This document shows positions 1,555-56,120 of a stretch of DNA of 64,000 bases, one piece after another. Made by a program: the position numbers and the translations under genes. The notes beneath the pieces were generated by a model. It was not told the DNA's origin. It worked only from the letters and a program-made list of their open reading frames with translations, and ran no database searches. The stretch is taken from assembly GCA_020536535.1 (NCBI GenBank), contig JAHLWZ010000850.1:11186-75185 (forward strand), given 5' to 3'. The DNA comes from Pelomyxa schiedti. Its lineage: Eukaryota; Protista; Evosea. Within the stretch, counting starts at the first letter, position 1. The number at the start of each line of letters is the position of its first letter.

Positions 1555-4500
1555 TCAATTAAAAATGGATAACGGGTGTGCCTCTGTGTTGAACACGTAT
1601 TTATCAAGTGGAATGAGGTCGTCTGGCGAATACAACAAGTACAGGTACTGCAATGAGTTGTGGGTGAGTGTTGGTAATACCAAGCAAAAAGGAATTACCT
1701 TGAGTGTTTCTGCCAGGAAATAGCTTGGTTGGGAGTCATCCTTGACAAACTTGCCATCAACTACATTGAGAATCCCACTGTAGCCTCCACCCGCGCACTT
1801 ACAGTGTTTGTCGATTGCCAACCAGAGATCCCAGCCCCAATCTGTGTTGAGTTTTAATATTAGAAGTTAGGGTTTGGGCTGAGTACAGTTTACCTTGATA
1901 AATCGGATCATGTGTCAGCCTCCATAAAATAAACATACTCTCCAGTGTTTCTATCAGAATGTGCTATGAGCTCCGACGAATAAAACTGCAGAAATACCTG
2001 GCCTAAGAAGAAAATGCTTTGCGCCAGCAACAAAGTCAGAGCCGTCAACAAAATTCACAAATTCGGGTGCCAACCCTGGACGGAGGTTAGCTCATTATTC
2101 TGGAGGGTTTGACGGGCCTGAAGGCATTCGCGTCCACATTTCATAACAAGTTCGGGTAATTTCCTTTGCAAGATGCATGTGCAGCTCGCTATCCCTATTT
2201 GGGTGCTGTGTTGAGTTGTATCTGGAGGCTCCCATTGCAAACATTGCTCCAGCAAAGCACGCCTGCATTGCCACAGTTGTTATTGAATAGGTAGTTAAGA
2301 AGCAGATTTCTACGCATACAAGTTCATCCATTTTCGGAACCGCGTGATTGTTGTCGTACTCACTCAAGTAGGTGAGCTTACTTGGAGAAGAAACTTTGAC
2401 AAGATGCTCCACAACACTTTTCATAGCTTCATCGTAGTATTCTCGATATTTTGCTCCCTCAGTTCCTGGACCACTGAGAGGTGTAAATGTGGAGAAAAAA
2501 GGAAATTGTGTACCCAAAAAGAAGCCACATCTTCATGAGGTATTCATAAAAACTATCGCCAAGAGCCCCCAGAGAAACAACAGCTGCAACCGGTAAAAAA
2601 AAACAGAGAAACAGAGGGAAGATTCACATGAGGAAAACTGTCCAGTGCTTGGGTGAATGTACACAGGATATAACCCTTTGTTCTTTGTGGCTGCAACAAG
2701 CTGGTCAATTACTTGCAAAGCCTGTAGTCCTGAAAGAATTATACCAGGTGAAGGAAAGGCGAGGAAAGGGAAATAAAGAATGGGAGTGCCAAAGAAAAAA
2801 GTTTTTCATACTTTCTCCTCAAGTTCTGGGTCGTTAACGTGCCGTGCCAAATAGGTAAATTCTAGTTGAACTGTTCCAACTTCAGAAAGAATAGAGCACC
2901 CCCCACTCCATGAAGGATTCGTTGCTACAGCTCTTTTTGTTGGTTGAGTAGGTTTTTTTCTTCTTGAGGAGCACACACGTTCCAAGGTTGATTGTGGTTT
3001 TTGGGATTCCAGTGGGTGTTTCAAATCCATGGAGTAAGATACGAGCCAAAGTGTGTGCTTTCTCTAGAAACATTTTATCTTTGCTCAAGTCATAAGCACT
3101 CAGGAGACCCCCAACAGTCCGTATTGTGGTCTCAAATATAGAAACATCTACATGCTAGAGTTGCTTTGGTAAGGTAATCACCACTTTCTGTGCAGACCTG
3201 CTGAAAATTGAGGGAATCAGCCACCCAGTCACGTGCTTTTTGGAATTCATCGTAAAGTTCCATTATGAAAAGAGTGTCAAGTGCATCAACCATTGTGAGA
3301 CCGAGATCTGCGAAGATAAGAGAAAGACATTGCCAGGTGTTACACACGAAGCCAATCATTCCCCTCACGGGCAACTGGTCTAAGGTCATCCTTACCCCAG
3401 GCATATTTTGTATAGCCGCCCCAAGCATAAATCATAGCCTGATGAGGATGTGAGGCTTGCTAAATTTTACCAATTACGCACTTGACGAATGGCATCTCTA
3501 CGCTCCTTTATGATAGCTTTCCTTTCATTGAGAGCTTGTTGGTCAACAGGTGATGACAAAGGAAGGACAGTTCCATTACTCGCAGGACTCGACGGAATAA
3601 CTGACAATGAAAGGTGTCCTGGGATGAGCACTCCAGTTTGGGGCACTAGAAGAAAGTTGGGTCAAGTAGCAAGAAAAAGAAGGATGTCACATGATTCATA
3701 AGGCAGGCTGGTGAGTTTCACCACTAAGTAAAGGCAGAAAACGATGAAAATGAGTCCCACAAAAAGGCAGGCCGTATTGGCACTCTTTCCGCGAGTCTTC
3801 AAAGGAGCCACAAAAGATGGGCACCTTGATCTCCGCGTTTTTCTTTTGTGACTTCTGCCAATACCTGCTGGCAGTGGCAACTGTTTTGCCGTCTTTCCTG
3901 CAATTTTGTTTCGAAGCAAACGTCAGGTAACGCAGTGCGTTGGCAAGATCGCCGTACCCTTGTCGTCACTGGAATCGTCTGCCGAAGACACGTCGCTTTC
4001 GTGGTACTGGGACATTCTTTTCAAGTCAAAAGCAAAAATCTGGTTTTTTTTCCTTCCCTTTTTGAGATGTCAAACAGTGACACCTGCGCAGGGGATTTAC
4101 TCCCGAATTGCCAATAAACCCCTCAATTCCAATCCAGCACACGCTCCCAATCTACAATCTCCAATCAATCACCCGCAATCCCCAGTTGCACTCCCACTCC
4201 CCTCCCTCAGTCTTTTTGCTTGGCCGGGGCCTCAGGAATGACTTGGTCGGGCACCTCAGCACGAGATGCCATCATGCTGACGGGCAGGACGTAGTCATCA
4301 GGCTCAACTGGGGGAGGTTCCGCTTCTGGAACGAATTCGTCGCCCCAGGTCGTCGTTTCTGCAGCGTCGGGAATCGGCCTCACGCCCGTGGTCCTCTCAA
4401 GGTCCTCGTCAATATGGGAACTGCAGGCGTTGTGAATTTTAGATGGTTTTGGGTGACCTTTTAATGAGTTTGCTTCGTTTATTTGTATAGTATTTTGTTG

Positions 4501-4635
4501 TGCTTGAGTGTTTGGGACGCACACTACGTCGCTGTAGTTGACGTCGCCCTTTGGCCTAAAATCGTACTCGCTAACAACATCAGCGTTCGTCACCGCTACA
4601 GGCTTCACACCTTCGCTCTTCTTCTCCGTGGCCAT
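1555..4635 (-). CDS. Class I alpha-1,2-mannosidase (GH47), type II membrane protein, multi-exon
   Basis: C-terminal motifs [11 protein letters not shown]|YLYLL...[29 protein letters not shown]-like [13 protein letters not shown] and [11 protein letters not shown]-terminal hydrophobic segment [18 protein letters not shown] follows an acidic cytosolic tail starting MATEKKSEG. Confidence 0.92.
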
Positions 4636-4776
4636 CGTGTCTCAAACAAACTCGCTATGACAAGGGTCAACTTTTTCCTTGTGTAGTACCCATCGTGCAT
4701 CACCATTGGTCATCCCCGTCGTTCCGTTTTTTCGTTTTTTTTTCCCCCTGTTCGCAACGCGAAAAACCGCAAACGA

Positions 4777-6613
4777 ATGGCAGCAACTGCCTCAGACTCT
4801 TCCAACACCAACACCACGCCCTCTGCTGCCTCCTGCTCCCTCCCACAAGAGCCGGGGGGCGGCGGCCCTGCCTCGCCCTCCCCCTCTGCCTCTGCCTCCG
4901 CGTCCTTGTCTGCAACCCCGTCTCCTGCACCCCCTGCGGTGCTGCTGCTGCTCCCAGAGGCGTACGTGGGGTGCATGGTGCTTGGGGCCGTGGGCGACGC
5001 CCTGGGGTACTACGGGGGCCGCTGGGAGTTCATGAAGTCGGGGGCCCAGATACACGCGGAGCTCAGCGAGATGACTCGCGGGGCGGGCGTCCCGGCCCTG
5101 GCTCTGTACGGAAGGGACTGGAGGGTGTCTGACGGTTTGTGCCTTGTGTGAGTGTGGGGTCGGTGGCTTCTGCATTATGGGATGGGAGCCACTGTTTCAA
5201 TTGGGGATTGTGACTTTGTGGGGGTTGTTTTTTGTGTGGCTTCCTCCTATTGTTTCCTTGCCATGATTTCACTATGATTTTTTTTTTGGGCTGTGGAAAT
5301 AGATACTGTGATGCACTTAGCCACAGCTGAGGCTTTGGCCACTGGGGCTGAGGGGAATGAGTTGTATCAATGTATTGCTGCACGCTATGTTGTTTGCTGG
5401 AAAGATATGGGTGGGAGAGCACCAGGTGCGAGCCTTCTGAAGTTTTGCACTTATTACTACTTATTTTGTTATGTGATATGTGGCAAGTTGTAAAGCTTAT
5501 ATTTCAGGCATGTCGTGCCTTACCGGCGTGAAAAGATTACTTGCAGATGGGTCCAACTGGGCGGAATCCGCTTTCAACCCAACTGCTGGAGGTCTCCTCC
5601 CCTCCTTCCTCTCAGCTATAGGCTTATTCCTGCCAGGTTGTGGCGCTGCCATGAGAGCCATGTGCATTGGACTTAAATATCCTCTTGCTTCACAACTGCA
5701 GTCTCTTGTAGCATGCGCTGTAGAGAGTGGTCGTATTACTCACCACAGCCCATCAGGGTATCTTGGCGCGGTTGCAGCAGCGGTATTCACAGGTAATCCA
5801 GACAGTCTTCACTGAAATTTAACCTTTCCAAGCCTACGCCATTCAAAAAGTACCAGTCATAGATTGGGGTTGGAAACTACTTGAAGAAGTTATCCCTGTT
5901 GCTAAGGAACATATCGTGTAAATTTACTTTGCTAGTCTGTGATGTTCATCTTGGTACCAGAAATTCTCGACGGTCAGTGGAACGAAACTTGGCCTTGTTC
6001 GGATATTTCCAAAAAAAGTGGAGTGATTACCTTGAATTGAGATGCATTACAAAAGCCAACAAGACTGGACCCACTTTCCCTGCAAAGTGGGGTGTTGAGG
6101 AAAGAGACTACTTCTACCAGTCTGTGTCCTACAGTGGCTGGGGTGGCTCCAGGTTTCCATCCCTTTTCCTTTTTCCAGTTTTCTTGCTTGCTTTCTTGCT
6201 TGTTTGTTTTACTGGGTTTTGACCGTTGACCAAGAAATAACTGTTAGTGGCCATGATGCCCCCTTGATTGCCTATGATTCCTTGCTGTGGGCAAAAGATA
6301 ACTGGGAGCAATTGTGTTTAGCCGGCATGCTTCATGGAGGTGACAGTGACTCCACAGGTTTGACTCCCCACTTTTTACCCTCATAAGAAAAAAAAAACCC
6401 ATCCCAAAAAAAGGAACTATAGCCGGAGCTCTTTGGGGAGCCGTTTATGGCCTTTCGAAAGTGCCCGAACGGAACTATATGTATGTTGAATATGTTGACA
6501 GAGCTGCCTCTTTGGCTCTTGAAATAGGCCGGGCCTCTCACCCAGACTTTGCTGCACAGGAGGCCCTTATGCCTGGAAACATGTCTCTCAGACCAACACT
6601 ACATGGAATTTAA
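4777..6613 (+). CDS. ADP-ribosylglycohydrolase, ARH1/ADP-ribosylarginine hydrolase-like
   Basis: [28 protein letters not shown]|[41 protein letters not shown]|[10 protein letters not shown] and HGGDSDSTG|[12 protein letters not shown] match ARH1 including the Mg-binding SDDT and DSDS motifs. Stop TAA at 6611-6613. Confidence 0.92.
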
Positions 6614-6710: not shown

Positions 6711-8756
6711 TTAGAAAATTATCTTCATGAGAAGCAGAGCAATGATAAGCACGATGAGGGACTGCAGGAAACAGGTGAGTACCTGGAAACAAAAGAAGTA
6801 ACATACGATAACAGCAGGGCGCAGAGTAATAACTCTCATGTTAAGAGGTGCTGGAAGGACAAATAGCTTGTTCCATCGGCGTATGACATCACACTCCAGC
6901 GGCGGAATGTACTCACCTGGGCCATAGACAAACCAGCGCGTGCCGGGTTTGCGGTGAAGAACCTGTTGGCGAGCCGGGCGTGATGATGCAGTGGTACTGT
7001 GTGATGGAACTACAGCACTGGCGCCTCCTCCAACCCTGAATCCAAAACCACCAAAGTTAAACCCTCCACACAGTCTAATATTTCGGTCATCAAATTCCTC
7101 CTTGCAAATGAGCTCTAGAGCTTCTTCTTCTCCTGTTCTTTGGTGAGCACATAAAAAAAACGGGGGCGGGGGCGCGGGGGGTGGGGGTTAACGTACCGAG
7201 CACGTAAATCTCTCGCACGCCACCCTCTAGTTGCTCTCCAGGTTGGAGGAAGAAAGTCTGTTCACCCAGTAGAATTTTACGGCATCCAAAGTGCTGAACA
7301 CCAGTTTCATCATAGTAATCGCGGATGATACTAAATTTGTTCGGATTTGATTGAGATATATTAAAAGTACCAGTATTGACGGGATGTGAGAGTTGTAATA
7401 TTCACTGTAGTAACAACCTCCTCACCAACGTCTGGGATATAACTTTCCGCATCCTTCATGGTGACAAGCCATTCTTCACCCTTTTTATGGTATTTTCTGA
7501 AGCGATCCTCAAAACTTAGGCGTGCCCGGAGTTGGAGCGCAGTTTTTGGTGTAAGTACAATGGCCTAGAATGATGAGACTTTACTCTCTTAGGATTAGGA
7601 AAATAACGTCTACTTGCCTTTACTGTGTCTACAACACGTTCCTCTACATCAGGCATATAGGCCTGAAGAATTGTTAAGAGTGAAACAAAAGTAATTCTCG
7701 TACTCCTTCTGCTCGGACAAGCCACTGTTCTCCAGCTTTGCGTGGTGTACCATTGCAGTCAATACAAGCGCGGTTTGCTAGGTGGTGTGGGTCGATTTAT
7801 GAGTGGAATAATGCAAGCACCTGCAAGTTTAAGAGCTGTATCTGGAAGAATAATATGGGCCTAAGAGCTTGAGAAAAATGAAACAAAAACTGTGAGCCTA
7901 CCTTCCTTGTTTCCACAACTTCCACTTCAACACGGGGCTGTAGAGTTTTAAATGAATTACAGGGATAGGTTGCCACTGACCTTGTAGGTGGCGGGCCCCA
8001 TAAATAGCCACTCTTCCCCAGCTTTTCTCTTCACTTGCATTACTTTTGTTGTTGGTGACGTGGCAGTTGAGAGGGTCGGAGTTGAGCTAGTGTTTCCTTC
8101 CACTTTCCCTGGGTTGACAGGTATTTCTACTGTTTCCTCAAAATCCAGATGTGCATGCAAGCGCAGTGCAGTGTTCGGGGCAACGACTTGGAAAGGGGTA
8201 ATTGGGCTCTATTTGATCGCCGATTAATCAAGTGACAACCAAGTCAGAGGCGTACAAGCAAGGCTTCCCCTGGGAACAAGGGGAAAGGATCCTCCTGCTC
8301 AAATCGAATCTCCAAGTCACCGTGTCTCAGTTGAGCTTGACCATCTTTGTCAACCACAACATTATGTTTCTGATCACGAATAACAGGGTTTTTTACAATG
8401 CAATAGTTGCGAGGAGGAATGATCAGCATCTCCTTGGGTCCTGGCGAAAAATACAGGTATTGATATCAGAAAAAAACCGAAACGAAACAAGTAATGGGCA
8501 AAAGAAGGAGCTATTCAAACCTAGGATTACACGTTCGTGTTCCCTACATAAAAATGTCTTGGGACCCACTTCAAGCCGTGTGACGAGCGTGTTCACATCC
8601 AATACATGAAGATAATGAAACGGTGCTACCTGTTTGTTTTGTTGTTTTTTTTGTTGTTGTTTGTTTGTTTGTTTGTGTGAAAACCGTATCTGGTATTTAT
8701 TAATACAGGTGAATCGTGACCAAGCACACCTTGATGAGACACGTGCGCCTGGACAT
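6711..8756 (-). CDS. Major vault protein-like protein: repeats R1-R7 only, plus a C-terminal hydrophobic anchor
   Basis: Spliced translation: MSRRTCLIK|VAPFHYLHVLDVNTLVTRLEVGPKTF; LRHGDLEIRFEQEDPFPLFPGE; AGEEWLFMGPATY; GEQWLVRAEG; GEEWLVTMKDAESYIPDVGEEVV; EQTFFLQPGEQLEGG; PGTRWFVYGPGEYIPPLECDV. It then ends ...SLIVLIIALLLMKIIF* with the stop at 6713-6711. Confidence 0.88.
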
Positions 8757-8799
8757 GCTTTCTTTTGTTTTTTTGTGCAGAATACCAGAATCCGCTTGG

Positions 8800-9020
8800 C
8801 GGTTTAATCGGCCTGTTCTGAATTTTTTCTAAAGAAGGATTGAGGAGATCCTCAGGGGCAGTTCCCCCCGGAGAGTCTTGGGCTGATCCAAAGGTGATGG
8901 CTACCTCCCACTGAGACGGCGATTGCCTTTTCCTTGAGGATATCAGAAATCTCAATCTGATGATCGGGACATCTGTACATGTCCACCATCAAAATAACCT
9001 TCCTTGTTGTTTTTTAACTG
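8800..9020 (+). ncRNA. Candidate box C/D snoRNA cluster (tentative)
   Basis: CUGA boxes at 8818, 8883, 8911, 8957 and 9017; UGAGGA at 8841 and 8935; GUGAUGG at 8894; UGAUGA at 8958. GGCCUGUU-CUGA resembles the U25/snR56-type guide, and CUACCUCCC-A-CUGA is complementary to conserved 18S GGGAGGUAG. No clean canonical box C precedes the first guide. Confidence 0.35.
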
Positions 9021-9131
9021 AAAAACAATTTCTTTTCGGCTGAGAGCCGGCCCCGGCGTGCCCTGAACAAGACTGACAAAAGATTCACAATTACAAAAAA
9101 AAAAACAAAAAGAAAGAGGCGCGTTTGTGCT

Positions 9132-12100
9132 ATGAGCAGTAGCAATGGCGATTCACCAAGGTCGATACACATAAGATCGGCCAGTGTTTCTGCGGTTACG
9201 ACAAGATCTCCGTCTCCAACACCGCCAACGAGGTTAGCGGCGTACGGTTTGGCGAACGGCGCGTGTCACATTCCGATTTCTGCTTCGGGGTCAACGTCCT
9301 CGCCTTCCTTGCTTTCGCCTGGTTTGGCAAGCGAGTTGAGACTTCGCAGTCACAGTGTGATGATGGGCGCATTCGTGCCTGGCAGGGGTGACGTTATGGC
9401 ACCTGTTGCCCAATCTGGTATTAGAACAAGTGGCGAAAACTGCACGTCAGCCCCCCGTGTTGGGTTGATGGAATCAGCAATACCCTTGGCAAAGGATTTA
9501 GTTGTGACTAGCCAGCTGCTTGCCAAATCTGTTACTGGGGAGGTACGGCAAAACTTTTTTTGCTTGGAACTTTTTTCTTGCTAACTAAAACAAAAAGGAA
9601 CGATGTGAATCGGAGGGAACAATTTTGACATTGGCTAAAGACGTCGCATCCCGTGCTCGGGCGATTGAGGAATTGGTTATGTCCCACCTTTCCCAACAAA
9701 CAGTGGGTGAATCACCACTTTGGTCTCAACTTAAGGAAGCTTTGACTAAGGTTTCTAAATCAATGCAAATCCCACCCATTACTCACTCAAAACTATTCCT
9801 GTAAAATGGTTGATTTTTACAAGGTTCAAGCAGCAGTTTTGTCACTCATAAGTGCTGTGAAGGCTGCTTTTTTGAATCCTTTTGATTTGCAGGCATCACA
9901 AAATGTTTTTACAGCCTGCAAGCACATAGCTAAATCCGTGAAAAAGGTTCGTCTCTTTGTCCTCCACTGAGACCTAATCCAGTCAGTTTATGTCTTCTGT
10001 GTCTGTAGTGGAGAAGGCTGTTTGTAGTCCTGTCCTAACCGGACAAGAATCACAGCCACCCACCACAAATAGTGTACCCTCTGTGGCAACTGCGACAGAG
10101 CAAACTCCTGCCGCTGCAGTCGTGAGCACGATTTCTCGTTGTAATCTTACTCACTGTCATTCATACAGACGAAAGGTTCCATCGACGTGATTGCAGTTAC
10201 ACAAGATATTATCAAAGCATTCTTGACCTCACAGCAAGCTATTTCTGTGTGTTGGATTACCCTGGATGCACTCAAATAATTATCCTTAAAGAGTCAGGAT
10301 GAATCTCAATTTATAGAAGGCATACGGCTGCTTGTCAGAAGTTTTAACAAATTCATCGAATATTCTCACCTCCACCATCTTGATCACGCTCAGGTCTTTT
10401 ACTGATTCCACGTAGAAGAATAACCATATAAAAGAGACTGAGAAATATGGCCATGGTAATCGGGCAGCTTTCAAAATCTGCATTTAAATTTCCGTCGGAT
10501 CCAGTATATCAATCAAAGTTTATGCAAGGTATTTTGGATGCGATGGTGGCACTGACGGTTAGTTCCTGAAAGTGGTGAGAAAAAAGTGACTTCACAAAGG
10601 ACATACTTTCAGCAACTTGCTCTGCTACCCCTGAAGCTGCGGAGGCTCTGAAAATTCTTTCAAATGCTAAGACTGAACTTCTTCCAAACCACAGCCCAGA
10701 AACATGTGTGGTGCCCCTCACAAAACATTCTAATGATTGCTTTTAGCACCACAATTAAGCAAGCCGACTGATCCTCCAGTGCCCAAAATATTACTTGCTA
10801 GTGCCCGTTATGATCCGCTTGCTGCACAGCATATCATTCAACTTCTAACCTCTACGTTTCCACTGTTTAAGAAAGAGTGGGAGGAAGCTCCACCTTCACT
10901 TGTTGACTCCACTTTACGTTCCATTGAAAGAATGGTTTCACAGAGTTCCTCTGATGTTTTGAGGTGAATTGTGGCTTTGTCCTTGAGATGCAATAACTTT
11001 CATTTTAGGAAATCGCCAAGCGCCCCTGTTATCACGGGATTTTCTCAAAAAGTATCCATCCTTTTTATCTTAATCACCTCATCATGTGCTAGGGTTCCTC
11101 CACTGGGACATCTCAAAAAACCAAAGCTGTGAGTTATAGCTAACATTATTTTGCCTCTCATAATCGAAAAGGATAAAGTAGAGGAAGTACTTTCAATGCA
11201 CACACTTGCACCATCCCAATCCACTGTTTCTCTTGTTACCAAATCTGCTGTATGCAATAGTAATAATACTAAAAAATCTAACATTAACTTCACCAAGAAC
11301 GTATCCCCATCACCTTTCGTGGCCACTGAGTCTGCCTCTGTAATATCCAACTTACTTAAGGCAGTTTTACAGCAATCCAACATGCTTCTGCGGGGGGAGG
11401 TTTGCCTAATAAGTACTATCCTAACACTCACTCAACTCAGCGGGTATCCCGTATGGATTTAACAAAAAGTGTCGAGGAGTTTATGGCCAGTGTTTGCTCC
11501 CTTCTTGACGAAACATCATCCCATGGGAAAAGTCGAGCGTCTGCTATTGCAGCTCTCACAGCATCCAACAGTTCAGCCACATCATGGGACCCCACTCAAG
11601 GCCCTCAAAAATTAGACCTTCTTTTGGATCAACTTTGTTCTGCATCAATGCAATTAGCAGAGAAGATAAAGACACGCCCTGTGGAGTTGCGTTCCAATTT
11701 TAACAAACACAAGTAACGAGGCATAGAATTGATGAAGCCGCTGTAGCAGATTGTACGGGGAAAAACTCTAAACGAGTCGAAGAGCTATTACTGGGTCAGG
11801 TATACAGGTTTTCCAACTCGTTGAGGTAATCCACATCATGATGGGGTGCATCCTAAACAATCTCTAGGTTCTTCGTAATCCATCTATTTGGTGCACTAAG
11901 ATTGATCTCTGGGTCAGGTGGCACTAGTACTAGCACAGTGCCAATGTTAGCTGCTATGATGCAACTTGTTGCTGCTTGTCAATGTCTTCTCTCTGGATCA
12001 CAGACATTCCTGTGTCATGTTGGGACATTGCAGTGCATCACTTCAAGTAATTTTCCCCGAAACCATATTTGTTCTAATCCAAAAATTAGGAGATTCAGGG

Positions 12101-34090: not shown

Positions 34091-34890
34091 TCAAGAGCTC
34101 CTCACATAGAGTACTTCTGGTACATTTTCTAGCTGTGCTGCAAAACGTGCAGCCACAAAAAGCAAGTCACTCGCCCTGTAAAATTAAAGAAATGTTGAGT
34201 GATTTGAAAGGATAAAGACAAAACAAAAAAAAAACCAAGTGTTAGGACACAAAACCAACCTATTGAGGAATTTGAGGGTGCAGGAGTCTATGTTGTGACC
34301 AGATTCAACCAAACTCACAGTGGACCTTTCAGCCCTGCGACACACGCACCTGGCAATGTGTAGGTTGCAGGAAATGGCCCCGCCACTGGGCAACACGAAG
34401 CCCGTCAGTGGCGCATTGTGGGAGTCGATAGTGTCTATTTGAAGCTCGATGTCGTCGACGTGCTGCTGCTTCATGGGTATCTGCCCACGCCCTGGTACGA
34501 AATGTCTCACAGAAAAAAGATACAAAGGGGGCGGCAACCTCCACCGCTGGTTGGTGTTGCAGATGTTGTTGTTGTCGCAGCAGTAGTTGATGAGCACGAC
34601 CCAATCGCAGTGCCAACGTCGAACAGTCTGTTCTGCATCGTGCACAACGCGGAGTCCAGCATCGCCCATAAGTCACACCTGGGCTCGCGCTCGGCGGAGT
34701 TCAGCGCCGCTCTGGCCGCCCCGACGTGCGCGTTGGCCTCGTCGACCGAGCCAAGGGCGTCGAACACCGTGTCCGACTTCGACCGTCGCTCTCCCGTGTA
34801 CATGCTGCTGGTCCCACCGTCCCCGCTACGTGTGTACACCTTGGACTTCACCCTCGAGGTGTGTGACGACGACTCGGCGGCACTGTCCAT
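34091..34890 (-). CDS. MMAB: ATP:cob(I)alamin adenosyltransferase, PduO/MMAB family
   Basis: KVYTRSGDGGTSSMYTGERRSKSDTVFDALGSVDEANAHVG, QNRLFDVG, LTGFVLPSG...LHIARCVCRRAER and FLNR|ASDLLFVAARF; two introns. Confidence 0.95.
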
Positions 34891-34978
34891 TTGGTTTTAT
34901 GAACCGGTTTTCCAGGTTGTTGACGTGCAGAAACACATTCATTTTAGGGGAAATTTGGACAACGAAAAGTGCTGGGGC

Positions 34979-37547
34979 TTACGACCTGTCTCCGGCGTGG
35001 GGGTATGCGTCCAAAGGCCACAGTGCGGGTCCGTCCCATTCGCGAATTCCTGGTATGTGGTGAGGGGTGGTTGAGCAAAAGAAATGAAAGCCTACTTGTC
35101 ATATTGTCAAGAACTGACTGCAGTTCCTGTTCAACGCCGAGTTTGCGTGCGGTGGCCATAGTCGGGACACCTGTTTCTACATCGTAGCCGTGTATTTCAT
35201 AGTAATGAGCGAGAAGCTGTTGGAATTGCTCACGCTGCCTGGCACCTTCCTCGGTGGCTGGCAGTAATGAGATTATAAGAAGATAAGGTGGAATGTAACC
35301 TGCGACTTCCGGGAGCTGGGGGAAAGAATCGTGCTTCCTAGAACAACCTTGCTTGATGTTAATTAAGCGCTCAATGAAGTAAACTCGATCAGCAAGCTCA
35401 TTCAGTACTGGGCCAGACCAATGGTCCGCAATTCCTGTCGCAGCAACGAGGAGTTTAACTAGCCCACCGTAGAGTGGCTCCTTCCAACATAGGGGCACTG
35501 CTGCTGTCCACGAATTAACAGCTCCCTTACATCTACCAATGCAATCAGTGAGAGTCGTTGCCCGCTCGGAGATAGTCAAGGCGACAACAGAGTCTGTCTT
35601 GAACTCAGCTGGGAACTCGTCCGGTTTGAGCAGAAGACGTGGGAGGAGATCCTCAGGATCGTTTTCCATGTACGCCCAAGACCTATACTGGTTAGGAAAA
35701 CCTCTGGGACAGTGTTAGATACCTTCCGCGAAGATGGTCAGCTCCACGTGTGGAAATTGCGTGAGACAGTGCCCACATGCCTGCTTCATGAGGGCCACGG
35801 CTCACACCTTTTACGTGATAGCAACGCCTCAGAGCTTCTTCTCCCATCAATTTGGCAAATGAGTAGTACCCCTCGGCAAGGACATTCCCAAATCCTAGTA
35901 GATTATCAATACCCTGGAGAAAAGGTCATGGCAAGGGAACCCTGGCGGAGGGCAATTCTATGGATGAGCTCCACTTGATTTTCAGCATTTTCCCATTCCA
36001 AAGAAAGACCTCCAGTAACCTAAAGTTGTTTACTACGTTCATGAAGAACCTGGCAACTTACTGTATCATTGATGAACCCTTTGTTGTACAAATCTTTGGC
36101 AAGTGCTATGTCATTTCCAAGAGCAATTACATCCATTCCATACGCGTCAGAGAGGTTCTCCATTTCCAGAATGGTGACAGGATCTTTGATGCCGCAATTG
36201 GTACCAAGACACATTATACCCTCGTATTCCAAGGCTGCCCCCTTTTCACCAGCACGTCTATGGCCTTTGGGCATGGCATACGCATTTTTGCACTTGACAG
36301 GGCACCCAAGACAGCCATGCCTTCCGGTCTGATTCTCAATAAATACAAGCCAAAAGGAAAAAGATGGCTGCGGACCTCATATTGTTTCCAGCTATCAGGT
36401 TGCAAGTTCAGAGGCACTTGGTCTTCTGTCCAATACTCTGAGTAATACCTGTGGCCTGGTTTCCAATGGGCCATACCAATATGTGTTCCATATCTGACAG
36501 GTTCTTAGAATGCACTACTAATCATGCAATGGAACGCACTTGCTGATAGTTTCTTTGTACTTGGGGTTTGTTAAAAAGAAGTTTACATCTTCAGCAGCCA
36601 ATGAATCGAACGTTGCCTGACAATCAATCAAAATCAGAAGGATTTTAGCAGACTTACCTTATCACATAAGGGTACTTCTGTCTTACCAAAAGCAAAGACA
36701 GCCTTAAGTAATTTGGAACCCCACACAGCTCCTAAACGAGTCAAATTAATATGGATACTACACAATGTGATAGGGCCCTACCACTTCCTTTAGCAGCCGA
36801 AGCATATTTATCCACCATTGTAGAGGATGCTCTTGCCTGAGAAACAGTTAATAAATTACCTTGGAGTGGTAAAGTACCAAGTTTTCTCCCGCTTGTCCGA
36901 TGCCCATAACACTTCCAGCTCCATGGACCTCCTTCAGTTTGTCTGTCGCGACCCATATAGATTTACCCCAAATTTCACTGGCGTCGCGCAACTCTGCCCC
37001 GGTACTCGTGATAAGAAGATACTGAGGTCTTGGGGCTTTGCCATGAATTACAATTTGATCAATCCCGCACCTCTTGAGGTGGAATCCGAACATGCCACCT
37101 ACATTCCCATCCCCAAGTATAGCTGCACAGCTTAGAAACTGCTTTTTTGGAGAGAAGCCATACCACTGTAGGCTGAAATGGTACTGACCTCTGTTCTGCA
37201 GGACATGGGTAATCTTGTACCAGTGAACGGTCCGGGAGCTATACAAATTCTATTTTCAGGACCCAAAGGATCGCAATTTATGGGGCACTCCTCAAAAAGC
37301 ACTTTCGAATTGAGTCCACGACCCCCCATGTACCTGGTAGGGGAAGAAAAAGAAAACAGTGAGTATTGCATACAATACTAAAAGTAAGATCTTACTTGAG
37401 AGCTAGAGAGAGTTTCAAAGGGACGGATGTAATAGTTTGGGCAGTGAGATCCACACGAAGAATTGTTCCCATCCAGCCTCCGTGAGCCACTGGATCTTCT
37501 GTCGTTGTTGTCGCTGATGCAGTAGCAGGTACGGTCGTTGTCGCCAT
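34979..37547 (-). CDS. Aldehyde:ferredoxin oxidoreductase family (AOR/AFOR, W/Mo-bis-pterin + [4Fe-4S]), more than 10 spliceosomal introns
   Basis: GGWMGTILRVDLT...YMGGRGLNSKVL, GNVGGMFGFHLKRCGIDQIVIHGKA, IGQAGENLV, RLGAVWGSKLLKA, GCLGCPVKC (three Fe-S Cys), DAYGMD and DCIGRC (DxxGL(C/D)-type motifs; the second carries the fourth Cys), STRGADHLRG, C-terminal EWDGPALWPLDAYPHAGDRS*. Confidence 0.93.
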
Positions 37548-37803
37548 AGCGGAAGGACTTACTTTATTTTTTTTTGATTTGTGATTTTGTTCTCCTGAAT
37601 GTCGTGAGCGGAAAACCGTTTCTTCTCTACAGGCCGCACCAGGATGTACCATCCTTCCATTTTTGAATTCAGTCACAGATCTTCCGGAGGGAAGGGAGGC
37701 AGAGTCTTCCTCAGGCCCGGCTTGACAGTGAGTTCTTGTGGATCACTCAGGAACTCCTGCCACTGTCCGGTCAGTGGAGTTTTCGTGCAGGCTCTCAGTA
37801 TAG

Positions 37804-40800
37804 ATGCCGTTTCGAAACCCCTTCCAGATATTGACTATGGACCAAGAGGCGCCGTTGTTGCCTGGTGAAGTGGACCAATTGGTCCAAGACATCCCACTAT
37901 CGCGTGGAGATCCAGTGCGTGCCGTCAAGAGGCTTTTGCGTGGAATAGTGTTTGCTGAGGGTGGTATTGAACTAAACTCAGAACACTCGGCGTCCCGTAG
38001 GCCCAAAGCTAAGACCACGGCCGTGTCTGTCCCACAATCCAGTGAATCTGCTGATCGAGTCGACAAGGCCTTGCGTGAACTTTCCCAACGTTGTCCTGAG
38101 ATACTCTCAGTCTCTTTGGCTGCTGTGATTTCTGACTGTAGTATTCCAGTGATGGTATTAAAATGCGCACTGTGATCCCATCATCTATCTTCCTATCATT
38201 ATTGTGTCCTTCCCAGTCAGTGTTGTGCTGTGTTTTCTTGTGTAACATTGTACTTGAAAATCTAATGTATGGATACCTTGGTTATAGTTGAGAAGATTGG
38301 CTTTGATCTACCTGGAAAAATTACTCTCAGCTGCAACCAGGGTTTTGGGATCAGCAATCCATCACCGTATCAAGGTGGTAACGTGATAATGATGAAGTTT
38401 TGGTTAAACCTTCTATTAGGCACAACTACAGGAGGCGATTAGCCGTGAGAAGGATAGAAAACTCCTCAAACCATTGTGCTCAGCTGTGCTGAGCTGTTTC
38501 TTGAATACAGGCGTGTTCCCAGTGTATTATTTACGCTCACTTGCAGATAAGAGGTTTTTTCTTTGAGTTAACTGCCCTTTACCCAGGCCAAGACAGTCTC
38601 CCATTTGTACTTCAGTTCATCAAGTCAACAGTGTGTGCTTGTTGTTACCAACTGGTGCCTCACAAACATAGGAGGAATATCACAGGGTAGCAGGTTTCTC
38701 AATGCTGTCAGAGTTGTCTGTTGGCCCTCAGTCCAATCTTTCCCAAGTTACTACTCTTCTGTATATGGGACTAAAGGACACAAGCTTATCAGTACGTTAG
38801 ATGCCAAATCTGGGCTTCTCACTTTTTTTTTCAGGTACGAAATGAAGCTCTCTGTGCTGTTACTTCATTTGCTGCTGTCACAGCAACAATTAAACCTTTT
38901 CAGGGATTTATTCCCCTTCTATTAGAAGTGTGGCTCCTTTTCAATTTTGGAGACATTTTATCTTCAAGCTAGACACTCAATATGGCTGTGTGGCAAAAAG
39001 AGCAAGAATACTCTGTAAAAATCATCTCCAATTTTCTGGACTTGACGGAGAGTCACCCCTGCTTCTTCAACCCTCATTTATCAGATGTCTTCTCCTGCAT
39101 GTTTCTCATTGCCTCTTCACCAACAAACTCTGATGGTAATGGTCGTTTTGGTTTTTTGAAGTAACCATCCCATAGAATTACGGCAGGATGCTATAGAATT
39201 TTTTGTTTCTTTAACTGAAATTGCCCCATCCAGTGTGAAACGGTACCGATTCATCTTTTCTTTCAAACTCACTCCAACTACCAGCAAACTGCCAGCACTA
39301 TTTCCCACAATTATTGTTTTCCTCCTTGAACTTCTCTCCACCATAAGTGATGATACTGAACAATGGGAATCAGATCTTGATGATGACGATGTTACAAATA
39401 TTTCCGTGGCAGAGCAAGCTTTGGACCGAATTGCGCTTGCTCTTGGATCATCTGCTGTTCCAACACTGCTTTCATCTGTTTCAAGTATGCTTACTAACAA
39501 AACGGAATGGAAGAAAAGGTGGGGAGGCCTTATTGGCCTCTCTGCTTGTGTAGAGGGGTGTCATGTTGCTCTTGATAAGCACATCCCTGAAATAATCAGG
39601 TTTCACTACCTTTCATTCTTTTGAATTAAGTTCTTCAGTATTGTTATCCCCCTTCTTGAGGATGAACACCCCCAGGTGAGATGGGCAGCATGCCACTGTA
39701 TTGCACAGTGTTCATCAGATATTGTATACTTTTTTCTGTAGCCTCCTACTCATTAGTAATTAGCCACTCCTTCGAGAAAAATTCGTGGAAATAATTTTGC
39801 CTACCTTACTGGCTCACTTACGTGATCCTTCGTTTAAGTACTTGTGTTCTACCAATAGCAAAGATATTGACTTTTTCTGTAGAGTTTTTCTGCACTGTGT
39901 GGATTCAATTGGACTGTTCCTTCAGGATTGCCCCTATTCGAAACTGGAACCATACTTGGAGCAAGTCTTGGCACAGATTTATCCACTTTTGACCCACTCG
40001 TAAGATTTTCCATTGTTTCAATATACTAATAAAATCTAGACATCCAAAGGTTGGAGAATCAGCAATGCTAGGCCTTGTTGAAATTGTACAGGTCTCTCAA
40101 GGGCATTTCTTCAGAGTATTACCATTTATCAATACTACTTCTTATACCTGCAGTTTTATGACATCTTTGTTCCTGTTTTGAAAAAGTGCACCTGCCAAAG
40201 ATTATTGCACTGATTAATTTGGTTCTAGTATGCTAAAAATGCTGAAAAGTTCTGGTGATTGTGCTAGGAAAAAAATTCAGTACGCTGCTATGGAGTGCCT
40301 CAGCTTAATTGGTATGAGTTAGGTTTTTACGCATCTTAGTTCAACTGACAGCTATATCTGTGGGCAAGCAGCACTTTCAAAAAGATGCCCATGAAGTATT
40401 AGGTGATATTCTTAGCATAATGGCTGTATGTTAGTACTGGGGTTTTCCTCTTATAAGTACTTATAAGATGCCTGGGATGGATGGAGAAAAGTATTCCTTT
40501 GTGCACCAGACGTTGTGTCGATTTTCTGAGTGTCTTGGTACCGACTTCTCCCCGTTTTTGTCTCTGGTAATACCGCAATTGATTGCTCAAGCTTCCCAAG
40601 AAATAACAGAGCCTGGCAAAGGTACTCTTTGAGCCACTATTTTTTGTATCGCTTTTTCAGTTTTAGAGTGTCTTAGTAGTGGAAGCTGTGACACTATTAT
40701 TGAGACACTTAATTTGCTTAAACTTTATGGAACAAATCTGGCAAATGAGTTTATTTCTTTTGTTCCAGAGGTCAGTAAACTTGTTCTGAAGCATCTCACA

Positions 40801-42571
40801 TGTACAGAAAATGACGGTATTTACTTCATTATTCCTTCATTAGATTACGAGAGCATTTTGTTACTTGGCTTACTTTCTTTGTAGAAATACGGAAGGCTGC
40901 AAGTGATCTTGTTCCAACATTATTCCACTGCATTTCCATTGTTGATAACAGTACTTCGGCAAGCTCTGATGTATACCACGCACACAAGACTGCCCTTTGG
41001 CGTGCAATGTACCGTGGAATAATGGGGAGCATTTCTTTAGTTGCCGACAAAGAGACTATCCTTGAACAATTGGAGGGATTGTTGGAAGTTACCCTTTATT
41101 CCATCCTTACTCCCTCTTATTCTCAAAAGACACTTCCTTTCATTGATGCGGATTGCCTTACTGTTGAAGAGTTCTCTCAGTTTACGAACTTTTTGACTGA
41201 CACTTTCAGACACTTCCATGAAACCAACACTCGTGCAAGTTGGTTTCTTTTGCAAAACAAAAAAAGTCAATCTTCTCTGTCCCAGTTACTCGTGGAATGA
41301 GTGAGGAACTTGAAGAGTTGACTGAACTGGAAGAAGAAGAAAAAATGGATGGTAGCATTGCAATTCAGGTTAACAACTTTATTTTTCCTTTCTTGTAAAA
41401 ATCAATGAAGGCATGTGAATGCACAAAGAAGATGGCTTCTCTGAATAAACTTGGGGAATATTGCAGTTACTTTGCCTCTGACCTTCTTCCAGTTGTACTA
41501 GTACTAATGGTTATTTTACAAGCACCAAAAATCCTTTAAACACAGTAGAAAGGGTGCTGAGCGACCTTACACTGAGAGATGTCTTGCACTGTGTGCATAT
41601 GATGACCTCCTTGAACTATCCTGGTTTCCAAAAAAAAAAAAACAACCAAGTAAATTAAGACATGGAAGGGAAGCAGCACAGTGTCATTTTCATCATTTCA
41701 TTGACCTTTTACTGACAAATGTTACGGTTCATGACGCCAGTCTACGACAATCAGCAGCCTATGGCCTAGGTTTGTGGGTGCCAGCTTTCTAAGATTAATA
41801 CTCTCCAGGATTGTGTGCCATGAAAGGAGGGGACTTTTTTGTGCCATTTGCACCAAAGGCTCTCTCGGCCTTGCGCAATGCAGTAAATGACCCCTTAGAC
41901 GGGTCTGAGTCGAGCCAGGCCGCAACTGACAATGTTATATCTGCGTTATTCAAAATTTGTACTTCAGCGAGTGGTGTGTACCTCCGCAAAAAAAAAAAAA
42001 GTTCTAGCCAAGATAAGCAACAATCAGCCAACCAACTCACCCACCCCGAAGCCAAATCCTAACCAACCGCATCAGGAAGAATAGTGGACGATATCACTCT
42101 TTGGCCGATTCTACTGCAATCACTTCCTATTGTTACTGATACAGTGGAGGCCCTTATTGTTTATGATTCCCTGGCTACACTTCTCCACAGGTAATTTCCT
42201 GCAACCCAAAGGCTTCCCATAACTCCAACTCGCCACGAACTACCCAACCCACCCCAAAAAGGTCCCCGGCCGTCGCTCTCGGCAGAAACTTCGAGTACCT
42301 TGGGCAGGTGATCAGGGTGATCGCCCGCGTGGCCAATTCCAAGTTGGTTACGCCCGAGACGAACCTGAAGCTCGCAGAGTTCCTGCACCAGGTTGCCACA
42401 ACAACAGCACAAACGCCGGCAGGGCCGACGCAGCCCATTCTGATGCAGTTATGGGAATCCCTCAGCGCAGACGCCAAACAGAACATAGTGCAACTCCAGA
42501 CCCTCTGGAACACACACTCCCAACAAGCTCAGCAGGCGCAATCCACACAACAAACATCAAATTCCTCTTAA
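37804..42571 (+). CDS. IPO5: Importin-5 / karyopherin beta-3 (Pse1/Kap121-like) HEAT-repeat protein
   Basis: DDDDVTNISVAEQALDRIALALG...WKKRWGGLIGLSACVEGC and EDEHPQVRWAACHCIAQ; later HEAT exons (AAMECLSLIG, AATDNVISALFKI, LPIVTDTVEA). Confidence 0.85.
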
Positions 42572-53495: not shown

Positions 53496-53655
53496 ATACT
53501 TACCTGGTACTCACGGACACTGATCAACAAGGGTGCCTCGTGTGGTTCCGTCCCGGTCTTTGCACTCTGGTCTGGGATGAGCTTTGGGATTCTCGAAAGG
53601 GAATCCCTAGTACACAATTTTTGTTTAGCCGGAGTTTGCGTTTAGGCGCAACTCC
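53496..53655 (+). ncRNA. U1: U1 spliceosomal snRNA
   Basis: 5' AUACUUACCUGG; SL1 loop UGAUCAACAAG (U1-70K site, human GAUCACGAAG); SL2 loop UUUGCACUC (U1A site); SL3 GGGAUUC/GAAUCCC; Sm site AAUUUUUG at 53616-53623; 3' SL4 GGAGUUUGCG/CGCAACUCC; total 160 nt. Confidence 0.95.
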
Positions 53656-53759
53656 TCCAATAAATAGAAAAAAAGACCTCGAAAAAATTTGGGCAGTGGG
53701 TTTGAGTTCCAGGGTAATTGATTGTCAGAAAGAGCACTTCTAATGATGGAGAATTTTTA

Positions 53760-56120
53760 TTAGCTTTTGTCTGGGGGTGGAGGGATGTATATTGTGGCAC
53801 TGTTCTGGTCAGCTTCTGGGTGGTGAGGGGTCTTAGAAACCACAACTTTGACTTTGGCTGCCGCAGCAGGAACCGTGGATAGCACAGCCGGGCCACCAAC
53901 ACACCCTCCCTCACAGGCCATCACCTCCACAATGCTTCCCGGCGGGTGTTTTCTAGCGTAGGCCTTCAGCTGCTTCACGCTCTCCACGTTCAATCCATTG
54001 ATCAGTGTTAGTGTTGGAACTGTTGTGCCAGACGTAGATGTAGCTGTGAAGAATGACTTGACAGCGCCAGATACACCACCAGTGACTGCAAAACCTCGCC
54101 CCTCTCTCTTTCCGACTTCGAATCCCTCAAGGGGGGCAAACGTGGTGAGCTGCGGGTTTTCGTTAGTAATCAAGGGGGGAAAGACAGGGGTAGATACATC
54201 AAGACCACGGCCGTGAATCATTGCAAACAGCTCCATGAAAGAAAGAGCAAAATCGGTAGCAGGATCACGTAGAGCCTCTGCTCGTTTCGCAACGCACGGA
54301 CCTGGGCAAGTTACACCAGGCAGTAACTTCAAAAAATGTACCAATAAAGACTGGGGTGCATCCAGGGTACTTCTCTCTTGCCAAAAGACCTGTGTAATGT
54401 AATGGTGATCGAGTAGTTGACATAGCATCCTCCAAGTCAGGGATGTGTTTTTTCACACAGTTGACATATCTTTTCAGTCATACAGTTAATGAAAAGGACA
54501 GCAACTGTATACACACGCTGGGCAACAAGATGTTGTCATAAAATCTGGTTTCCCCTTGGAAGTTCGGAGACTCCTCACGTGTGCCAATTCCGTAGCTTCC
54601 ATTTGAGCAACCAGGTCAGCACCAACTGACACCTACATCTTGTTAATACAACCCGTTGTCAATGCAGAAAATACATCAAGAGCGGCATGAAATCCCAAGC
54701 CCTTCACCAACCCAGCAGCCAATACAGCAACGTCCACTTTACAGTGTCCAACAATTGCAGGAGCCAAAAGAGCAACTACTTTTTTAGTCGGGTCAGCAAG
54801 TGCCTTAAGAACATCAATCAATTGGCTCTTAGGCATGACAGCTCCGAAAGGGCATGAACGTTGGCAATTGCCGCAGAAAATGCACTTATTGAAGTCAAAT
54901 CTTCCAAGTGTCAGTGAGAAACTTAGCTAGGTGTGGAAGTACTTTTTATGCCCGTCATCTAGTGCGGTAATAGCACCAACAGGACATGTTGCCAGGCAGG
55001 GAATAGGGATGTTAACAATGGCATGATAAGGGCACGACTTCTGGCAAATTCCACCTGCACGACGAGTAAGGTAAATCATATAAATTCTCTGGACATTTAA
55101 TGCACAAAGAGGGGTTAATGCGAGCTCTTCCAAGTTCGTGGTCTATTGCTGCTTTTGGACAATTAGAGGCACATGGCCTTGCTATGCATGACTGTTACGT
55201 AAAGGGCATGAGGAAAAGATAGCTGCAGTAGGAAATCACCTGGCAAGCATCAGTAACAAAGTAGCGCTGGCGTGAGCACTTGTGACATGCCTACGTGAGA
55301 ACAAAAAGGTAAGACTACAGGGTAAAAAAATGAAACTTGATCAACCTCCTGAATTACAGTAAGAACTGGTTCCACAACCTGGTCTGTGGTACGTGCAAGA
55401 GCACGAGTTGCATAGCTGGCAAGTCGTGTTAGCTCATCGGTTTCGTCCTCTATGGCAAATCCAAGGGAAGCAATGATGCGGTATCGGATCATGGCACGGT
55501 CACGGTAGATACAACAGCCTGAAAATGGAAGATTACTTCCAAAGAGTAAAACCTGTTAACACACGGGAAGCATGCTCCGAGTCCTTGGGACGCATCGAAA
55601 TGGGCAGGCGATCAATTTCATCCACCAGAGTTCCGGCAAAGAACATCCTCGATATCTCCTCTTTTTTTTGGAGCATTATGAAGAGTATCACACAAGGACA
55701 TAGTATAGTATTCAATTAGTTCAGTATACTCCACACCTCCATCACACAAGGAACACACCCAAAATGTGAGTTTCAATGTAATTGACCTCATTGTCGAATT
55801 TGTAGTGGTCCTTTGGCTCCACCCTCGGCCTCGCCTGCACAGGTTGCGCCATAGCCGAAGAGGTATTAATGGGAGTGGCAGGGACCGTGGCAGCAGGTGT
55901 GCAAGTGACGCCCACCGTAGCCGTTGCTGCGCTGGTACTTGGTTGCGTCGCGGGAGTGGCCGCCACTGCTGTAGTACTGCTAGTGGATGTCGTTGCTGAT
56001 ACGATATGTTAAAAAAAAAAAGCCGGAAAAGCGAGAGGGAAAAAGCGACAACAACTCGAAGAGCACAGCGCGACTGAGATCTTGCATATTTGTTTTGTTT
56101 GGTTTATAACACTCACCCAT
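53760..56120 (-). CDS. [FeFe]-hydrogenase, group B-like monomer with several N-terminal ferredoxin-type clusters
   Basis: H-cluster motifs TSCCP, FIG|PCVAKRAE and EVMACEGGCVGGP; Cys clusters ACHKC, CIARPCASNCP, CQKSCP, PCLATCP and CIFCGNCQRSCP. Start ATG G|CA at 56120 followed by a GT-AG intron gives MATTSTSS... Confidence 0.93.

Follow-up and report, generated by a model that had tools for sequence, protein, structure and literature searches.

The stretch of Pelomyxa schiedti DNA analysed here (the window: 64,000 nucleotides of contig JAHLWZ010000850.1 in assembly GCA_020536535.1, positions 11,186 to 75,185 of the forward strand) carries on its minus strand an intact AOR-family gene (AOR, aldehyde:ferredoxin oxidoreductase), which runs from an ATG at 37547 to a TAA at 34981-34979 (whole gene, 34979-37547). 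Overall, we consider it probable that this is a nuclear, spliced and expressed gene for a single-subunit AOR/WOR-family enzyme, acquired anciently from an anaerobic prokaryote and retained under purifying selection. Computed for the gene were its structure, splicing and transcription, its family and clade, the ligand and catalytic residues of its product, its ortholog in a second eukaryote-like contig (L001), and its neighbours.

The gene consists of 13 exons separated by 12 GT-AG introns of 40-62 nt (62, 41, 41, 50, 41, 46, 47, 42, 46, 40, 42 and 46 nt, in order), and the spliced coding sequence of 2025 nt encodes 674 aa with no internal stops and no frameshifts. Two procedures led to this model: in one, all GT..AG pairs lying between anchors of homology were enumerated and rated by their fit to P0001, P0008 and P0011, three relatives from bacteria; the other was an independent spliced-alignment dynamic programme run against a fourth relative (P0148), and they agree on an identical 12-intron structure. 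Pfam matches above the gathering score fall on five exon pieces and follow one another in the correct order, AFOR_N (positions 25-165; E values 1e-24 and 1e-17) and then AFOR_C (positions 64-384; E values 7e-23, 4e-9 and 5e-18). Exon 1 (37396-37547) contains a 22-aa Thr/Ala-rich N-terminal extension at 37547-37482, and exons 2 (37164-37333) and 3 (36878-37122, with GDGNVGG at 37114-37094) encode AFOR_N, both being supported by Pfam, model and RNA. Exons 4 (36782-36836), 5 (36658-36731, with GAVWGSKLLKA), 6 (36540-36616), 7 (36376-36493), 9 (35941-36019) and 12 (35096-35257) are each supported by model and RNA. Between them lie exon 8 (36062-36328), the catalytic core with its CxxCxxxC, LEYE and DAYGMD motifs, identified by Pfam and by alignment to 1AOR, and exons 10 (35723-35894) and 11 (35300-35682), identified by Pfam and motif alignment, of which the first carries STRGADHLRG with the catalytic His at 35754-35725 and the second carries DCIGRC, the second pterin motif with the fourth Fe-S Cys, at 35546-35529. 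Exon 13 (34979-35049) supplies the clade-specific C-terminal tail EWDGPALWPLDAYPHAGDRS at 35041-34982 and the TAA stop.

Transcription and splicing were followed in RNA. Three RNA runs from single cells (2023, labelled 'protist metagenome') contain 57-60% of the sampled words of the AOR stretch, and a 2021 run from the same study, for which the kind of library is unrecorded, contains 100% of them. Across 34700-37900, the contigs assembled from the three RNA runs skip all 12 modelled introns exactly, with CT..AC ends on the plus strand and with no variants and no indels, whereas a single unspliced 16.6-kb contig from the 2021 run (X4, record 6) spans the whole interval. With GT-AG introns that are removed in RNA, this is a eukaryotic nuclear gene. 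An earlier note on this DNA had described a full-length gene broken by more than 10 short GT-AG introns and had suggested RNA-seq to confirm the splicing; the open 674-aa frame, the 12 introns found by two methods and the 12 of 12 junctions skipped in RNA agree with that description, and the frameshifts in spliced mRNA that it named as contrary evidence are not seen. The RNA contigs stop inside exon 1, at 37474 and 37404, where they pass into SMART-type template-switch oligo sequence, and because the oligo begins at differing positions we take them to be truncated cDNAs. None of the three runs covers 37482-37588. The alternative start is Met26 at 37472; ATG 37547 appears likelier, since an invariant bacterial Gly-Trp sits upstream of Met26 and the L001 ortholog has no Met at that position.

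The predicted protein shares the three-domain architecture of Pyrococcus furiosus AOR (1AOR) and FOR (1B25) and of the Clostridium autoethanogenum-type AOR (9G7J), and the residues on which the chemistry of these enzymes depends can be traced one by one. In a direct alignment of exon 8 to 1AOR, the three cysteines of CLGCPVKC (36313-36290) coincide with Cys288, Cys291 and Cys295, LEYE (36232-36221) falls on Glu313, and DAYGMD (36148-36131) falls on Asp338-Asp343. By way of an alignment of P0148 with 9G7J, the GADH of STRGADHLRG matches the GGCH His motif, and DCIGRC matches DSLGLC, which unites the second pterin motif and the last of the four Fe-S cysteines (Cys494, counted with Cys288, Cys291 and Cys295); GSKLLKA is located inside 36797-36700, and with it every motif named in the earlier note has been placed. 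The protein holds, in common with the solved structures, the features that define the family, namely four [4Fe-4S] cysteine ligands, two DxxGx(D/C) pterin motifs, and the catalytic Glu and His. It also keeps 116 of the 121 columns that are conserved at >=97% in 75 prokaryotic members of its clade. Searches of PDB sequences with the C-terminal 142 aa gave no match, and those with exon 10 alone gave chance-level matches only.

That clade consists of proteins of ~648 aa from anaerobic prokaryotes, with residues 3-648 of which residues 24-674 of the window protein are colinear, at 55-57% identity and with no large gaps. The nearest protein representative is P0001 (649 aa, from a Syntrophobacteraceae metagenome-assembled genome); other examples are P0148 and members from Syntrophobacteraceae, Desulfosarcina alkanivorans and Maridesulfovibrio, and the hosts include Anaerolineae, Methanosarcinales/Methanoperedens, Hadarchaeota, Desulfobacterota, Synergistota and Desulfurococcales, among others. 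Like these proteins, the window protein is colinear from end to end, ends in the same tail (W-x-G-P...YPHG), and is encoded by a standalone gene with no WorS partner; it differs from them in its 12 introns, its 22-aa N-terminal extension, its long stem branch, and its eukaryotic host. The solved AORs are distant relatives that lack the tail, which makes the ~648-aa proteins longer than 1AOR, 9G7J and 1B25 by ~35 aa at the C-terminus.

A clade representative scores almost equally against solved AOR and FOR (313-323 bits), with WOR5, WOR83 and BamB further off. Clade representatives reach 36-52 bits against the GAPOR_Arch NCBIfam equivalog, for which the cut-off is 1300, and 224-264 bits against the YdhV equivalog PRK09849, for which it is 868; E. 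coli YdhV is of the same family, but its own class is multi-subunit and membrane-associated (PMC13328260). BamB (4Z3W), which supplies the tungsten site of class II benzoyl-CoA reductase as its tungsten subunit, is likewise of the same family, is ~650 aa long, and occurs in Desulfobacterota-type anaerobes, but the match to it is weaker (242 bits) and partial, covering residues 2-418 only, and no BamC-I partner genes are found in the window or beside the bacterial relatives at three loci. Nor does a WorS or polyferredoxin (Fer4) gene neighbour the clade members at three bacterial loci, so these are standalone genes; moeA adjoins one of the three. The window gene, with MMAB-like and importin-like neighbours, has no adjacent WorS, and a eukaryotic partner gene could be elsewhere in the genome. 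We therefore read the clade, the window protein included, as one that corresponds to the WorL-only Class I, the class of single-subunit, ferredoxin-dependent WORs (PMC13328260). The clade accession and genera were not found in the supplements of the published 92-clade WOR scheme, and the window protein is in neither of two large protein collections.

On a Chloroflexota-like contig (L089), the genes beside a clade member are moeA, one for a pyridine nucleotide-disulfide oxidoreductase and one for a molybdoenzyme of the xanthine-dehydrogenase family (3277-4518, 7983-10211), a neighbourhood that may hint at the function of the clade. Two proteins considered as eukaryotic fragments (P0007 and P0252) were rejected, one being a truncated and the other a frameshifted bacterial gene. 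Bacterial clade members with no relation to the eukaryotic gene lie at L004 5001-5891, where the gene is internally truncated, and at L006 5175-7087, where frameshifts in an assembly of long reads break it up.

A second eukaryotic ortholog was found through a fragment match. It lies at 2883-5335 on the plus strand of L001, part of a 170-kb contig of 39% GC in the ENA metagenome assembly ERZ21831265, where a prokaryotic gene caller had cut it into pieces. Spliced alignment restores an intact gene of 661 aa with 11 GT-AG introns of 37-52 nt; its product is 75% identical to the window protein, and nine intron positions and phases are common to the two genes. The contig is eukaryote-like, and SAM, ART and ICMT/PEMT domains are encoded beside the AOR gene. 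Because nine introns agree in position and phase, most introns were gained before the two lineages diverged, and an ortholog that is 75% identical and shares those introns argues that the transfer is old and that the gene has been under purifying selection. The nonsynonymous divergence (dN) between the two is 0.197, and the synonymous divergence (dS) is saturated, for which reason we give no numeric dN/dS. The gene has been inherited vertically and has long been under purifying selection. Neither the protein collections nor JGI metagenome contigs, scanned with patterns specific to the pair, yielded further close eukaryotic orthologs, in searches of a kind that detects eukaryotic genes poorly.

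Phylogenetic analysis nests the eukaryotic pair inside the prokaryotic clade. In a quick maximum-likelihood tree of 97 sequences, the window protein and its ortholog group together with 100% support and a stem of 0.65, within a group of 34 (Shimodaira-Hasegawa-like approximate likelihood ratio support of 95) whose remainder is nearly all Thermodesulfobacteriota; with a reduced taxon set, the quick tree shows no starred clade in which other sequences join the pair. A careful tree of 74 sequences recovers the two at 100/100 in a group of 31 that includes 24 Thermodesulfobacteriota, with support of 94/96. The split of the ~648-aa clade from the outgroups is strong in both (100* in the quick tree, 100/99 in the careful one), and the stem of the pair is 0.65-0.67 substitutions per site. 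This nesting demonstrates a transfer from a prokaryote to a eukaryote, for which a Desulfobacterota donor is our best estimate. The GC content of the exons (0.49) is near that of the window (0.45) and therefore fits an old transfer; the idea that today's Syntrophus symbiont was the source of a recent transfer was rejected in view of the common introns, the length of the stem and a GC content like that of the host.

A long stem invites another reading, that the gene has been neofunctionalised or survives as a cofactor-less relic, for instance as an Fe-S protein only, and the few changes at otherwise invariant positions point the same way. Against it, two diverged eukaryotes both retain every one of the four cluster cysteines, the two pterin motifs, the catalytic Glu and His, and 96% of the invariant residues, which would be hard to account for had the ancestral chemistry been lost. 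We regard the relic as very improbable.

The genes around the AOR gene bear on its chromosomal setting. A cobalamin adenosyltransferase gene (PduO/MMAB-type, Pfam Cob_adeno_trans) at 34184-34890 on the minus strand begins 89 nt downstream of the AOR stop; it consists of two frame pieces, lies where the GC content is locally higher, has an animal MMAB as its best named relative (54% identity), and is covered by RNA contigs over 34700-34806. On the other side, an importin/karyopherin-like HEAT-repeat gene at 37804-41300 on the plus strand (Importin_rep_4 at 39235-39624) is divergent to the AOR gene on its promoter side. Further along the contig, at 53642-55133 on the minus strand, lie several exon pieces of an [FeFe]-hydrogenase-like gene (HydA or NARF), with Fe_hyd_lg_C matches at 53760-54428 and 54265-54456 and, at 54927-55133, a weak Fer4 match, all on the minus strand. 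The hydrogenase that the earlier note placed 16 kb away therefore exists, as the Fe_hyd_lg_C matches at ~53.6-55.1 kb attest; 16 kb of separation between two genes of a eukaryote is no evidence of functional coupling.

Since these neighbouring genes are eukaryotic, the AOR gene is not contamination. The suspicion that it might be a bacterial contaminant, a chimera of the assembly or a dead pseudogene has understandable grounds: its nearest relatives are all prokaryotic, and the source organism hosts bacterial and archaeal endosymbionts, one of which has an AOR pseudogene. The Syntrophus endosymbiont of P. schiedti is annotated with the tungstate transporter genes tupA/tupB and a two-piece 'aldehyde:ferredoxin oxidoreductase, putative pseudogene' (PMC10579272 supplement). 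Against this stand the 12 spliceosomal introns removed in RNA, the intact frame, the eukaryotic neighbours on the same contig, and the introns in common with the ortholog in a second eukaryote. The splicing evidence already refutes the suspicion, and the probability that we leave to it is close to nil. Thus, where the earlier note held that the gene is no bacterial contaminant and is a domesticated lateral transfer, both claims survive, the first through the RNA and the neighbours on one contig and the second through the phylogeny that it had called for, in which the pair (100/100) sits inside the ~648-aa prokaryotic clade, together with the splicing and transcription of the gene. The part of its interpretation that holds is accordingly a full-length, spliced and transcribed AOR gene, laterally transferred and now on a eukaryotic chromosome, as RNA, tree and neighbours attest.

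In weighing the ancient acquisition of a functional single-subunit enzyme, which we still consider probable, several observations must be counted on the other side. The first 73 nt of the predicted coding sequence have no RNA cover. NCBIfam has no model for the ~648-aa clade, no model's cut-off is reached, and the clade is without a characterised member. Five clade-invariant residues are altered in the window protein, among them R205K and H609F, both common to the ortholog, as are three of the five in all. The placement of the donor is not robust at 94/96, and an approximately unbiased test does not reject a Chloroflexota/Methanosarcinales subgroup as sister of the pair (p = 0.157).

A general pathway for the enzyme can be proposed, in which its cofactor loading, metal, substrate, direction, location and electron partner are matters that we infer. 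The gene would have been acquired by an ancestor of the amoeba lineage, most likely from a Desulfobacterota-type bacterium. Its product would most likely be a cytosolic homolog of the Class I WORs, with one [4Fe-4S] cluster and one tungsten- (possibly molybdenum-) bis-pyranopterin; by inspection, with no predictor run, neither a mitochondrial-type presequence nor a C-terminus resembling a type 1 peroxisomal targeting signal is apparent. The enzyme would interconvert aldehydes and carboxylic acids, exchanging electrons with ferredoxin, and through the ferredoxin pool it might be linked to PFO, to [FeFe]-hydrogenase and to the H2 passed to methanogenic symbionts. In one direction, the oxidation of aldehydes would supply further reduced ferredoxin from which H2 could be made. 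In the other, acids would be reduced to aldehydes and then by an alcohol dehydrogenase to alcohols, which could serve as an electron sink, much as acid reduction followed by alcohol dehydrogenase disposes of electrons in acetogens (PMC12727526).

The cofactor metal cannot be read from sequence. Molybdenum cofactor guanylyltransferase, which bears on how the cofactor might be made, is a prokaryote-type enzyme. In the supplement to PMC10579272 (files 3 and 5), the amoeba is credited with four XDH and with ABA3, the sulfurase of the molybdenum cofactor (Moco), and Pelo_18822 is entered as a 'molybdenum cofactor guanylyltransferase'; the amoeba list contains no AOR. On this listing, the host would use Moco and so make molybdopterin (MPT), and it may also have a MobA-like enzyme of the type that forms the bis-MPT cofactor of YdhV in E. 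coli. The boldest form of our proposal, that this is the first eukaryotic tungstoenzyme, its tungsten-bis-pyranopterin coming from the host molybdopterin pathway and a MobA-like step and its activity serving a ferredoxin/H2 metabolism that feeds methanogens, is one that we put forward tentatively, as quite possible and still short of probable. The same inventory would also suit a protein that uses molybdenum-bis-MPT in place of tungsten, made by the ordinary host Moco pathway and a MobA-like enzyme, and for this YdhV offers a precedent as a mesophilic AOR-family member that prefers molybdenum and whose molybdenum-bis-MPT is formed through MobA (PMC9103625). However, the clade lies far below the YdhV equivalog, as its scores above indicate, and nearly all characterised members of the family are tungsten enzymes (PMC12096430, PMC13328260). 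We think the molybdenum enzyme rather unlikely.

No element heavier than tungsten is known to play a biological role. The AOR family has so far been recorded from bacteria and archaea only. According to a 2026 classification of the family, eukaryotes have to date yielded no identified tungsten-containing protein (PMC13328260), and a 2018 survey of 250 eukaryotic genomes recorded just three families of molybdoenzymes, those of sulfite oxidase, xanthine oxidase and MOSC (PMC6147048). The P. schiedti genome, with 7.4 introns per gene, has been described (PMC8887013), and the main texts of that paper, of PMC10579272 and of the Mastigamoeba genome paper make no mention of AOR, tungsten or molybdenum; full-text literature searches returned nothing relevant on AOR or tungsten with amoebae, protists or hydrogenosomes. 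Within the searchable literature, then, the novelty that the earlier note claimed holds. As an enzyme it is unremarkable within a family already known; what is new is its eukaryotic host, its introns and the cofactor biochemistry that it implies. In this context, the gene is a concrete candidate for the first eukaryotic tungsten (or bis-pterin molybdenum) enzyme, and because it is intact and expressed and occurs in two species, tungsten use and bis-pterin synthesis in eukaryotes become experiments on a defined protein. Published metabolic maps of P. schiedti are drawn without an AOR reaction; with the gene, models of metabolism in anaerobic protists and of the syntrophy between amoeba and methanogen would gain a ferredoxin-linked reaction at low potential.

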